Program-made: the position numbers and the translations under genes
Sequence record: OM634661.1
Strand: one strand, 5' to 3'
Length of the DNA: 64,000 bases
Part shown: one piece after another, positions 15,758-57,989 of the stretch
Layout: the number at the start of each line of letters is the position of its first letter
Position numbering within the stretch: position 1 is the stretch's first letter
The notes under the pieces: model-generated
What the model was told of the DNA's origin: nothing
Databases searched by the model: none
What the model saw: the letters and a program-made list of their open reading frames with translations, nothing else

Positions 15758-16849
15758 ATGAATTTACTAGAAAAATATAATAAAATGATGACAGAAAAAG
15801 AGGGGTCTGGATTCGTAAAGAATTCAAAAGTAACTGTAACTGAAGCCCTTACTACTGCTGATGCAAACATTTTAATCCCTAAAGTTGTTTCTCAAATCGT
15901 TGTAGAAGCGGCTGAGCCTTTATACCTTGCTTCTCAGTTCTTCCAAAAGGTTCAAATGTCTGAAGGTCGTTCAATGGAATTCATCCATTTTGGAGCTATT
16001 CGTGCATTTGAAATTGGAGAAGGTCAAGAGTATCCAAACCAAACATTAAACCTTACTAAACAAGGTATGGGTCCAGTAGATGTCAAAGTGAAAAAGTATG
16101 GTCTTAAAGTACAAATCACTGACGAAATGGTATCTGACTCTCAATGGGATGTTATTGGATTACACCTTAAAGCAGCAGGTCGTGCAATGGCACGTAAGAA
16201 AGAAGAAGTAATTTTCGAAGACTTTAACAAGCATGGTCACATCGTATTTGATGCTGAAGCATTCTCAGCTGGTCAAGATGGATACCCAACAGGTCGTGGT
16301 TTCGATGGTAACTATAACGGAACTCTTTCTGCTGAAGATATTATCGAAATGGCTACATCTATTATGGCAGCAGGTTATACACCGACTGACATTATCATGC
16401 ATCCACTTTGCTGGGCATTGTTTGCTAAGAACGCAGTACTTGATCAGGGTTCTACAGCAGCATTCGGTCAAGGTGCAGTAAGTTTTGATCCAACAAGCTT
16501 CAATACTTCTAATGCACTAGGTCTAAATGTTATCTTCTCTCCATTCGTTCGTTTTGACGATGTTGGTAAGCAATTTGACTTCTACATCGTAGATCGTAAC
16601 AACGTTGGTGTACTTCTAGTGAAAGAAGAAATCTCTACTGAGCAGTTTGATGATCCATTGCGTGACATCAAGACTCTTAAAATGAAAGAGCGTTATGGCG
16701 TAGGTATCTTAAACGGTGGAGAAGCTATTGCAGTTGCTAAGAACATCAAGTTCGCTAAGACTTATTCTGCACCACCTCGTACTTTCAAAGAAATGGAACT
16801 TCCAACAGATTACTCTGGCGAAGGCGCTAAAAAGAAAGACGAGATTTAA
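15758..16849 (+). CDS. Major capsid protein (HK97 fold)
   Basis: ILIPKVVSQIVVEA..., AFEIGEGQEYP and ARAMARKKEEVIF patterns; 363 aa; position; strong RBS AAGGAGG. Confidence 0.9.
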   Translation: MNLLEKYNKMMTEKEGSGFVKNSKVTVTEALTTADANILIPKVVSQIVVEAAEPLYLASQFFQKVQMSEGRSMEFIHFGAIRAFEIGEGQEYPNQTLNLTKQGMGPVDVKVKKYGLKVQITDEMVSDSQWDVIGLHLKAAGRAMARKKEEVIFEDFNKHGHIVFDAEAFSAGQDGYPTGRGFDGNYNGTLSAEDIIEMATSIMAAGYTPTDIIMHPLCWALFAKNAVLDQGSTAAFGQGAVSFDPTSFNTSNALGLNVIFSPFVRFDDVGKQFDFYIVDRNNVGVLLVKEEISTEQFDDPLRDIKTLKMKERYGVGILNGGEAIAVAKNIKFAKTYSAPPRTFKEMELPTDYSGEGAKKKDEI

Positions 16850-16881: not shown

Positions 16882-16920
16882 AGTGAGTTAAGCCTACTCT
16901 TAATGGGTGGGCTTCTCATT
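16882..16920 (+). terminator. Hairpin or terminator after the major capsid gene
   Basis: AAGCCTACTC/GGGTGGGCTT stem with G-U pairs and an outer AGTGAG/CTCATT stem; weak U tail. Confidence 0.5.
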
Positions 16921-16952
16921 TATATAAATTACTTTATGGGGGCGTTTTAACA

Positions 16953-17204
16953 ATGGAAATCAAAAAGCTTACACTTTACGCACAACAGCCTACTGAACTT
17001 ATGACTGGTGAAGGTACTTATGTTCAAGTATTCGGTGCTGTAAAGCTTGGAACTTCACAGGATGTTTCAGAGTATGTAGGAGCAGATTCACTTGGGAAGT
17101 TTGCATTAGGTGAAGGACAGGTATTGTATGGGGCAGCTGGATCAGCCAGCTACATCAAGGATGGTGAAGATGTCATAGTTGTAAAGCATGACGAGAAACC
17201 CTAA
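16953..17204 (+). CDS. 83-aa putative virion protein ending in CCC-TAA
   Basis: Follows the major capsid gene; its last codons overlap the Ig-domain ORF, which is in the +1 frame. Confidence 0.7.
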   Translation: MEIKKLTLYAQQPTELMTGEGTYVQVFGAVKLGTSQDVSEYVGADSLGKFALGEGQVLYGAAGSASYIKDGEDVIVVKHDEKP

Positions 17205-17802
17205 GAACCCCGCAATAGGCGGGGGATCAAAACCTAATCCGACTGGCATCACGACAAGTGTTTCTACACTCAGTCTTGTAGAAGGAACAGGAAGCGATAT
17301 CCTAGTTAATATCGAACCATCATCAGCTGATCAGAACATTGTATTTACCACATCAAGTGCTTCAATTGCATCAATTTCAGAAGCTGGAACTAGCGATGGG
17401 AAGAAGAAGTTTCGTGTGAATGGCGTTTCTTCTGGAACTGCTACAATTACATTCACATCAAAACAAGACAGCTCGATCAAAAAGACTGTATCTGTCACTG
17501 TTAAGAAACCAGCACCGACTGGTATTACAGTTGATAAAGAAGTCTTAAACCTCACTACTGGTGAGTCTGGAGATCTAAACTTAAATGTTACTCCAGCAAA
17601 TGCTGTCCAAGAAGTAAGCGGTTCTACTGCTGATACTTCTATTGCTAGGATTAGTCCTCAAGGATTAGTCGATGGTAAAATTAAATATACTGTTAACTCT
17701 TTGAAAGCTGGAAGTACAACTATCACATTTAGTGTGAAGGAAGATACTTCTAAGAAGGTAACAGTCACTGTTAATGTAACAGATCCAATAGCTGAAGATT
17801 AA
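17188..17802 (+). CDS. Two bacterial Ig-like (Big_2-type) domains, probably made as a frameshift extension of 16953-17204
   Basis: Two repeats of PTGIT...L.L..G.S.DL...V.P..A.Q......S...SIA.IS; no good RBS before ATG 17188. Confidence 0.8.
   Translation: MTRNPKNPAIGGGSKPNPTGITTSVSTLSLVEGTGSDILVNIEPSSADQNIVFTTSSASIASISEAGTSDGKKKFRVNGVSSGTATITFTSKQDSSIKKTVSVTVKKPAPTGITVDKEVLNLTTGESGDLNLNVTPANAVQEVSGSTADTSIARISPQGLVDGKIKYTVNSLKAGSTTITFSVKEDTSKKVTVTVNVTDPIAED
17199..17224 (+). other. Putative +1 programmed frameshift site
   Basis: CCCTAA at 17199-17204, followed 3 nt later by hairpin CCCCGC-AATAG-GCGGGG; the +1 frame stays open to 17802. Confidence 0.65.
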
Positions 17803-17809
17803 AAGAAGA

Positions 17810-17848
17810 GAACCTGCCTCGGTTTCATTTGTAGGTAGGTTCTTCTTT
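17810..17848 (+). terminator. Intrinsic terminator
   Basis: GAACCTGCCT/AGGTAGGTTC stem followed by TTCTTT. Confidence 0.65.
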
Positions 17849-18693: not shown

Positions 18694-20172
18694 TTGGCAA
18701 TTAATAATTTCATTATAACTTCTGTGAATCCATCTAATGGAGAAACCAATGTAGCGCTAGATAAGATCATTGTTCTAAACTTTATATCCTCAATGAGTGC
18801 AGGTTCATTAAATGGAAATAATATTCGCTTAATTGATGTTGATGCAAATCAACAAGTAGATATTACGATTACATATGATTACACAGAAGCTTTAGCTAGG
18901 ATTGAGCCAGTATCTAGTCTATTAGGATCTCACTCTTATTCTTTAGAAATAACAGGTGGCTCAGAAGGTGTCAGAACCCTCTCAGGAGACTATCTAGGAA
19001 GCTCTAAGACTTATTCCTTTGTAACAGTAGAAACACCTCAAGAAGAGCCTATAGAAGAGCCAGAGGAGCCTATTGATACAGAAGAACCTACAGATCCCGT
19101 AGACGATACGGAAGAGCCTGTTGATGATGGTGAAGATCCCACTGATGATCCTGATACAGGAGAAACAGAAGAACCCCCTACAAATACAGATGATGACGTA
19201 ATAGATCCTGGCGGTGAAGATCCTGATGAATTTAACTTAGAGATCTTAGAGACATTTCCTAGAAAAGATGAAGTGAATGTAACACCAGAAACCATTATTA
19301 TTATCTTCTCAGAAGATGTTGATCCAGCAACAATAAGTGAGAATTCAATATATCTTATTAAAAGGCCATTAAGAAGAGAATTAACTAAAGTAGACTACAT
19401 GGTTCATTATGCACCATCTAAAAAAGCACCTATCCAAATAGACCCTATTGTAGATGAACCAACGAATATCATTACACTAACCGTTCCAGAAGAAACAATT
19501 TTAAATGATGAAGAGTATACAGTTATTATTAGCCCTAAAATCAAAAGCATTACTGGTAAGCCAATGGCAGAGCCTTATGTATTTGCTTTTATGTCTAAGT
19601 TTGATCATTTGTATGGTGATGAGGAAAGTATTCGGGATGATCTAAGACCTTATGCAAAGAACATACCAGATAGAATGCTTTATAGATATATGAGAGATAT
19701 TAGTAGAGAAGCATATGACATTGTTTCAACAACATCTACTTTTAATGCTGCTGACTATGCAGATGGCAAAGCACCATTCTTTGTTCACCAGTATGTAAGA
19801 TATAAAACATCTTATCAATTATTCCTGAATGCATACATGAATCAAATTGCACCAGGTGGAGATGACGGAGATGATGGCGGTCTTACGATCACTGCTGGTA
19901 CTATCAAACTTGGAGACCTTACTGTTCAAGGAGGAAGTGAATCTACTAGCTCAGGATCAAGCAATAAGAGCGGTGTAGAGCTTTCTATTGATATGAATGA
20001 TGTATTAGAAGAAATGAAGAAACGAATCAAGCATTGGGAAGATCTTCTTCATGGCTATCATAATAGAGGATATGCGAAGCCTAAACAAGGACAAATGAGC
20101 AGTAATAGTACACCGTCTACAGGTTATCCAGAGTTCTTGACTAGAGCAGAATACAGAGAGCTAGGAGGATAA
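18694..20172 (+). CDS. Neck or head-tail connector-like protein with two Ig-like (Big_5-type) domains
   Basis: ITSVNPSNGETNVALDKIIVLNF and ILETFPRKDEVNVTPETIIIIFSEDVD repeats separated by a P/D/E linker; helical C-terminal part; located in the neck module. Confidence 0.6.
   Translation: MAINNFIITSVNPSNGETNVALDKIIVLNFISSMSAGSLNGNNIRLIDVDANQQVDITITYDYTEALARIEPVSSLLGSHSYSLEITGGSEGVRTLSGDYLGSSKTYSFVTVETPQEEPIEEPEEPIDTEEPTDPVDDTEEPVDDGEDPTDDPDTGETEEPPTNTDDDVIDPGGEDPDEFNLEILETFPRKDEVNVTPETIIIIFSEDVDPATISENSIYLIKRPLRRELTKVDYMVHYAPSKKAPIQIDPIVDEPTNIITLTVPEETILNDEEYTVIISPKIKSITGKPMAEPYVFAFMSKFDHLYGDEESIRDDLRPYAKNIPDRMLYRYMRDISREAYDIVSTTSTFNAADYADGKAPFFVHQYVRYKTSYQLFLNAYMNQIAPGGDDGDDGGLTITAGTIKLGDLTVQGGSESTSSGSSNKSGVELSIDMNDVLEEMKKRIKHWEDLLHGYHNRGYAKPKQGQMSSNSTPSTGYPEFLTRAEYRELGG
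19031..19230 (+). repeat. Low-complexity coding repeat (EEP/TDP/DDP units)
   Basis: Encodes EEPIEEPEEPIDTEEPTDPVDDTEEPVDDGEDPTDDPDTGETEEPPTNTDDDVIDP. Confidence 0.7.
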
Positions 20173-57971: not shown

Positions 57972-57989
57972 GGGCGGTATTAACCGCCC
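57972..57989 (+). terminator. Hairpin, possible terminator
   Basis: GGGCGGT-ATTA-ACCGCCC followed by TTATATAT. Confidence 0.5.

Follow-up and report, generated by a model that had tools for sequence, protein, structure and literature searches.

On independent occasions, ribosomal frameshifting has been recruited to add Ig-like domains to a variety of phage proteins (PMC5009743). The tails of phage SPP1 contain two forms of gp17.1 at a ratio of 3:1, and the extended form, gp17.1*, is produced by a +1 shift in which ribosomes pause at a rare CCC codon and slip onto the overlapping, frequent CCU within the hexamer CCCUAA (PMC6316719). The +1 site of tsh in the Listeria phages PSA, A118 and A500 is '(AAA) CCC_UGA', and the +1 shift in cps of phage PSA is stimulated by a pseudoknot (PMC5009743). 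A first-pass annotation of the DNA described here invoked both the SPP1 case and the extension of capsid and tail proteins in Listeria phages as precedents; the latter is borne out by PMC5009743, and the former by PMC6316719 as well as by the SPP1 sequence, which has the same CCCUAA. Specifically, gene 17.1 in the SPP1 record ends with GCT CCC TAA, followed by the FN3 frame.

Ig-like domains are also carried by T4 Hoc and T5 pb10, in which a small capsid-binding module is joined through a linker to one or more outward-facing Ig-like domains. These are non-essential accessory virion proteins that are encoded in head modules as single open reading frames (ORFs), without recoding.

Here, we report an analysis of a pair of overlapping genes in a stretch of 64,000 nucleotides (hereafter, the window) that is 100% identical to Bacillus phage vB_BauM_KLEB27-3 (OM634661.1), with window coordinates equal to record coordinates. 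KLEB27-3 is a jumbo myovirus of Bacillus australimaris with a genome of 216,671 bp, and its relatives include phages WH1, Edson and 0305phi8-36; a literature search found no paper on KLEB27-3. Genome-wide counts given below refer to the pieces of the record that cover 214 of its 216.7 kb. The genes of interest, gp017 (16953-17204) and gp018 (17188-17802), lie in a module with the order portal (gp013), prohead protease (gp014), gp015, major capsid protein (gp016), gp017, gp018, gp019-gp022 and tail sheath (gp023), where the major capsid gene (15758-16849) was recognized by its matches to Phage_capsid_4 and PHROG 3922. GenBank lists gp017 and gp018 as two separate CDSs, each labeled 'structural protein', and annotates no recoding. 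Judging from the sequence, it is probable that the two are a single recoded gene that is read through by a programmed +1 frameshift at a CCC-stop 'shifty stop'. The features on which this reading is built are as follows.

16890-16914, plus strand: terminator-like hairpin after gp016, the upstream boundary of the cassette (10 pairs and a T-rich tail; dG -17.9 kcal/mol, z -5.1)
16938-16942, plus strand: Shine-Dalgarno-like GGGGG of gp017 (duplex energy with the anti-Shine-Dalgarno sequence -8.4 kcal/mol)
16953-17204, plus strand: zero-frame ORF gp017, starting at ATG 16953; 83 aa, 8.8 kDa, an all-beta ORFan and presumed virion-anchoring module
17179-17240, plus strand: longest stretch of the cassette that is invariant among all the haplotypes compared, centred on the shift site and spanning the opening of the +1 frame, shift site, hairpin and linker (0 of 69 variable sites)
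17196-17204, plus strand: candidate shift site AAA CCC TAA at the 3' end of gp017; the hexamer is that of SPP1 17.1/17.1*, and the AAA-CCC-stop context is that of Listeria tsh
17203-17802, plus strand: +1-frame extension of 199 codons and a stop, comprising the linker KNPAIGGGSKPNPTG and two Ig-like domains; a separate CDS, gp018, from ATG 17188 in GenBank
17208-17224, plus strand: 6-bp all-GC hairpin CCCCGC/AAUAG/GCGGGG, 3 nt after the stop, a candidate 3' stimulator (dG -13 kcal/mol, z -3.0)
17242-17490, plus strand: Ig-like domain 1 (Big_2, Pfam PF02368; gp018 residues 19-101), all-beta in the AlphaFold2 (AF2) model
17524-17781, plus strand: Ig-like domain 2 (Big_2/Big_9-like), the second Big_2 stretch, also matched by Big_9 (residues 119-198) and PHROG 41 (residues 108-198), all-beta in the AF2 model
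17805-17848, plus strand: long hairpin with a trailing UUAUU, located past the Ig ORF, the downstream boundary of the cassette (dG -21.4 kcal/mol, z -5.6)

The gp017/gp018 cassette sits in a variable slot: gp017-gp020 have no homologues in WH1 or Edson, and gp015, the capsid protein, gp021 and gp022 do. The next large structural protein, gp021 (18694-20172), carries N-terminal Big_5 Ig-like domains and weakly matches the PhiKZ capsid decoration protein gp35; thus, several Ig-bearing proteins are encoded by the head/neck module.

The geometry of the overlap leaves little room for a shift anywhere but at the CCC codon. As described in the first-pass annotation, the 83-aa ORF ends with AAA CCC TAA at 17196-17204, and the +1 frame at this point is CCT AAG AAC. 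This frame leads into the linker (K-N-P-A-I-G-G-G-S-K-P-N-P) and remains open for 199 codons up to the TAA at 17800-17802. Upstream, the +1 frame is shut by a TAA at 17182-17184 and opens from 17185 through AGC ATG ACG AGA AAC CCT AAG; therefore, any shift is confined to 17185-17204, and CCC_T is the only codon within these bounds with perfect +1 re-pairing. At this site, re-pairing would move from CCC (17199-17201) to CCT (17200-17202), and reading would restart at AAG 17203. When CCCT is read as one step, the outcome is a protein of 282 aa and 29.1 kDa (P0006), such that the two predicted products, originally given as 83 aa and 282 aa, match the computed 8.8 kDa and 29.1 kDa.

The codon usage of KLEB27-3 has the bias described for SPP1. 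CCC is the rarest proline codon, accounting for 10 of the 682 proline codons in window genes (1.5%) and 69 of the 2094 over 214 kb (3.3%); CCT is common, with 313 occurrences in window genes and 1040 genome-wide (46-50% of proline codons). Among the 292 gene-like ORFs in the 214 kb, gp017 alone ends with CCC followed by a stop, with 0.30 such gene ends expected, and when every +1-overlapping frame pair was scanned, only gp017/gp018 had CCCT within the overlap. No tRNA-Pro genes are encoded in the 214 kb examined.

Outside the window, at OM634661 120039-120112 (L010:6038-6113, minus strand), GenBank annotates a tRNA-Phe with anticodon AAA. This tRNA has an 8-nt anticodon loop, CUAAAAAA, is reported by ARAGORN as 'tRNA-??? 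anticodon (aaaa)', and matches the Rfam tRNA model at 60 bits with an insertion in the loop. By its sequence, it looks like a tRNA of the quadruplet (UUUU) or frameshift-suppressor type, or else a degenerate one. CCC_U is not a site at which it can act, and a quick scan of +1 ORF pairs with in-frame TTTT yielded no convincing target for it.

The 6-bp GC hairpin that had been proposed to start 3 nt past the stop is indeed present at 17208-17224. Only 3 of 200 shuffled sequences fold equally well, and the entire window contains two all-GC hairpins of 6 bp, this one included, compared with 0.02 in mononucleotide shuffles. The other (57972-57989; GGGCGG with a loop of 6) begins immediately past the stop codon of the 55769-57970 gene and probably acts as a terminator. 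The hairpin downstream of gp017 lies within the Ig frame and is built from rare codons, namely CCC (1.5% of proline codons), GGC (11% of glycine codons) and GGG (7%), with a joint probability of 1.7e-6 for these synonymous choices, suggesting that selection acts at the level of the RNA, not of the peptide. Nothing larger stood out in a search for additional RNA structure or a pseudoknot around the shift site (z about -1.3). Because the SPP1 site has no obvious hairpin, a stimulatory role for this one is a conjecture. A search of sequence collections for the combined pattern of site and hairpin gave a single match (L008), which we rejected as a chance occurrence at an unrelated rho-independent terminator in a high-GC contig.

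The two Ig-like domains predicted in the first-pass annotation are well supported. Two stretches of gp018 match Pfam Big_2 (PF02368) with 45.9 bits, against a gathering cut-off of 22.8, and gp018 also matches PHROG 215, 'structural protein with Ig domain', at 8e-25. In a single-sequence AF2 model, two all-beta modules are preceded by approximately 25-30 unstructured residues at the N-terminus. Taken alone, gp018 thus starts with the linker and contains no anchoring domain. For the Ig part, the only relatives are distant Big_2 domains of bacterial surface proteins, and these are uninformative with respect to the acceptor.

The acceptor is far more obscure. Searches of protein libraries with 5.8 and 1.8 billion entries retrieved only two close homologues of gp017, P0007 and P0008, which came from a word search. 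Searches against Pfam, PHROG and the PDB gave no match even at an E-value of 10 and no similarity to any known decoration family, IMG/VR contained no relatives, and the protein library searches turned up no natural protein in which a gp017 homologue is fused in frame to Ig domains. An exhaustive HMMER search of 1.8 billion representatives yielded, beyond the close relatives, weak matches to repeats in two giant proteins. One of these, P0010 (2354 aa), contains seven HYR-like repeats with 31-38% identity to the C-terminal half of gp017 over about 50 aa; such matches are unreliable and may hint at a small beta-sandwich or be noise, and gp017 shows no similarity to the giant proteins of KLEB27-3 itself. 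The AF2 model of gp017, built from a 3-sequence alignment, has a pLDDT of 38 and is unusable, with only beta strands predicted, and the neighbours of gp017 in the ESM Atlas are unnamed small phage proteins, along with generic beta-sandwich or cupin folds, all of which serve as leads only. We consider the gp017 module a putative virion anchor given its location after the capsid gene, the lack of an anchoring module in gp018 on its own, and the depositors' labeling of both CDSs as structural. The description of gp017 as a head-module accessory protein derives only from gene position and the depositors' 'structural protein' label.

The cassette is not confined to KLEB27-3. Two independent Logan assemblies of public runs carry it, with 99% (L006) and 86% (L005) amino acid identity in gp017, and contigs from four further runs, belonging to four studies, span the shift site with no indel. 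Relatives of KLEB27-3 occur in metagenomes from food fermentation, rhizosphere, soil and freshwater. One of the contigs that span the site, of 721 nt and from a soil metatranscriptome run (X11), covers 17090-17810, that is, the 3' half of gp017, the shift site and the whole Ig ORF, and is compatible with a single transcript, with DNA carry-over as another possible origin. The first-pass annotation had suggested examining conservation of CCCTAA in homologues. The two-frame layout proved to be retained with no indel in at least six haplotypes, among which divergence is shallow. Given that all relatives are close (at least 86% amino acid identity in gp017), conservation of the site is weakly informative. 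The invariance of 17179-17240 has a probability of about 0.005 if this window is taken as pre-specified and about 0.36 if any window is allowed, and is therefore supportive only.

Selection on the encoded proteins is easier to read. When three sequences were compared pairwise, the 19, 11 and 15 substitutions in the Ig frame were all synonymous, with 0 non-synonymous changes, and with all haplotypes pooled, 32 of the 35 variable sites in this frame fall in third codon positions. For gp017, pN/pS is about 0.2 in the comparison with L005. Thus, as judged from substitution patterns, purifying selection acts on gp017 and, in strict form, on the Ig frame. The same comparison reveals that the 83-aa module diverges far faster than the Ig part, with 11 amino acid changes and a one-codon indel versus none, and with pS of 0.29 versus 0.13. 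This gap reflects either different constraints or recombination near the junction.

The main rival explanation takes the GenBank annotation at face value. Under this scenario, gp017 and gp018 are two separate proteins, the latter (204 aa, 20.9 kDa) being translated from ATG 17188 through coupled termination-reinitiation without a Shine-Dalgarno sequence, and the CCC TAA and the hairpin are incidental or perform some other role at the RNA level. The ATG is suitably placed, 14 nt upstream of the gp017 stop and two codons after the +1 frame opens, and it is the start chosen in GenBank; furthermore, the 282-aa fusion is a predicted product. An ATG would, however, be expected by chance within six codons about a quarter of the time, and this one lacks a ribosome-binding site, as originally noted: its Shine-Dalgarno duplex, at -1.5 kcal/mol, ranks with the weakest of the window, where nearly all other genes have values of approximately -6 to -14 kcal/mol. 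The Shine-Dalgarno sequence is also weak at 5 of the 17 other annotated overlapping starts in the genome, so its absence alone does not exclude initiation, although those five may themselves be mis-called. The other in-frame ATG, GTG and TTG codons (17416, 17701 and 17734) are inside the Ig domains, and accordingly no other start yields the whole Ig product. A protein initiated at ATG 17188 would carry a Gly/Pro linker at its N-terminus and lack an anchoring module, and a hairpin of -13 kcal/mol located 20 nt past the start would hinder rather than help initiation. Finally, separate translation would put three features down to coincidence: a CCC-stop found at no other gene end, a hairpin written in rare codons, and a sequence that exactly matches two validated +1 sites. 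We therefore regard this explanation as unlikely, albeit one to be taken seriously.

Two further possibilities treat the frame break as an accident rather than a signal. Two frames that join into a sensible architecture are also typical of a fresh frameshift mutation, and the gene could have once been continuous, been broken by a 1-nt indel and now be decaying, with only the 83-aa stub made and the Ig frame silent. This is hard to reconcile with the exclusively synonymous changes and the excess of third-position variation in the Ig frame, or with the persistence of the two-frame layout, free of indels, in six or more haplotypes drawn from several studies, and we consider it very improbable. 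That the deposited genome contains a sequencing or assembly error, and that the true gene is one continuous ORF, has nothing in its favor beyond being a generic possibility. The site contains no homopolymer of over four or five bases, and the same sequence recurs in contigs of four other runs as well as in both independent Logan assemblies, which makes an error scarcely credible. Selection together with the conserved layout effectively rules out both accidents. The programmed frameshift is the reading we prefer, because all the sequence-level features predicted from the SPP1 and Listeria type of shift are found here: the motif, a rare CCC overlapping a common CCU, an internal start with no Shine-Dalgarno sequence, a +1 frame encoding a linker and Ig domains, a nearby hairpin, conservation and purifying selection.

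We infer the slip and its efficiency by analogy with those sites, along the following lines. Ribosomes would initiate at ATG 16953 and translate the 83-aa module, and most of them would stop at TAA 17202-17204, releasing the 8.8-kDa protein. A fraction would pause with peptidyl-tRNA-Pro on the rare CCC and a slowly decoded stop codon in the A site, a pause that is probably prolonged by the GC hairpin positioned at the mRNA entrance, 3 nt after the stop. The paused tRNA would then slip +1 onto the common CCU, and translation would resume at AAG 17203 and read on through the Gly/Pro linker and the two Big_2 domains, giving the 282-aa, 29.1-kDa form with the same N-terminus. If SPP1 gp17.1* and the Listeria proteins are a guide, both forms may co-assemble through their common N-terminal module, putatively on the head or elsewhere on the virion, such that only some copies display Ig domains. 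The displayed domains most likely would contact cell-surface carbohydrate weakly, a presumed adhesive role.

One correction applies to the mass-spectrometry check proposed earlier. The junction peptide put forward in the first-pass annotation is not tryptic, because K-P bonds resist trypsin, which yields only HDEKPK; digestion with Glu-C is computed to release a junction peptide corresponding to residues 82-110 of the 282-aa fusion (P0006), KPKNPAIGGGSK...

To our knowledge, shifty stops are rarely accompanied by a dedicated hairpin stimulator on the 3' side in bacterial +1 frameshifting. We tentatively propose a broader model, which we hold to be possible but less than probable, in which such a combination joins a new 83-aa virion anchor to an Ig pair that exceeds it more than twofold in size. 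The rate of recoding would then set the number of adhesin-bearing copies of a minimal decoration protein on the jumbo-phage virion, and the cassette, flanked by terminator-like hairpins in a hypervariable slot, would be a self-contained display unit.

If the shift is confirmed, the annotation of KLEB27-3 would change from two 'structural protein' CDSs to one recoded gene with two products, and the CCC-stop +1 mechanism of SPP1 and Listeria phages would extend to 0305phi8-36-like jumbo myoviruses and to a very small acceptor that does not look essential. The case of a small acceptor fits the idea that Ig domains land beside any virion protein and are rescued by frameshifting. Being compact, with a 9-nt motif, a 3-nt spacer and a 17-nt hairpin, the site offers a handy natural test of 3' stimulators of +1 shifting in Bacillus, and systems for sub-stoichiometric display on phage particles could possibly be modeled on it.

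Comparison with phages that lack recoding at the equivalent position provides some guidance on what the fusion could be. WH1 and Edson are 0305phi8-36-like jumbo phages related to KLEB27-3, and they encode single-ORF proteins of 281 aa (gp107 of WH1, L003:5945-6790; GAKEdson_1040 of Edson, L004:5544-6389) in this same slot, which is flanked by the major capsid gene and the gp021 homologue. Each has a Pro-rich linker between an N-terminal domain of approximately 75 aa and two beta-sandwich domains, SdrD_B and Big_6, an organization that mirrors the 282-aa fusion but is contained in one frame, at a position within the slot that differs from that of gp017/gp018. We considered these proteins as homologues of gp017/gp018 and rejected the idea, homology being undetectable. 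The architectural parallel nevertheless makes the 282-aa fusion a plausible functional form. T4 Hoc and T5 pb10 share no sequence similarity with gp017, for which capsid binding is putative.

The closest likeness is to SPP1, which also has a Bacillus host. Both phages have the identical CCC UAA hexamer with its passage from a rare CCC to a common CCU, and in both, a virion protein acquires a beta-sandwich extension of the adhesion type, resulting in two products with a common N-terminus, as predicted for KLEB27-3. The differences lie in the partners and the context of the site. The SPP1 acceptor is an essential tail tube protein of 177 aa, whereas that of KLEB27-3 is an 83-aa ORFan adjoining the capsid gene; the SPP1 extension is one FN3 domain of 87 aa, compared with 199 aa, two Big_2 domains and more than twice the size of the acceptor in KLEB27-3. 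SPP1 has GCU before CCC and no obvious hairpin, in contrast to AAA before CCC and a hairpin in KLEB27-3. The SPP1 event is proven, and the KLEB27-3 shift is a prediction from sequence.

The tsh sites of Listeria phages PSA, A118 and A500 resemble that of KLEB27-3 in their AAA-CCC-stop context, and all these are phages of low-GC Firmicutes in which CCC is a rare proline codon; the stop is UGA in Listeria tsh and UAA in KLEB27-3. At the Cps site of PSA, the +1 shift occurs at ACA_CCC_UCC and is stimulated by a 3' RNA structure. The Listeria acceptors are major tail or capsid proteins, and KLEB27-3 brings a shifty stop and a hairpin together at one site. Overall, the locus would represent a known recoding mechanism and no new principle, differing from the described systems in its tiny ORFan acceptor, its jumbo-phage setting and its rare-codon GC hairpin.
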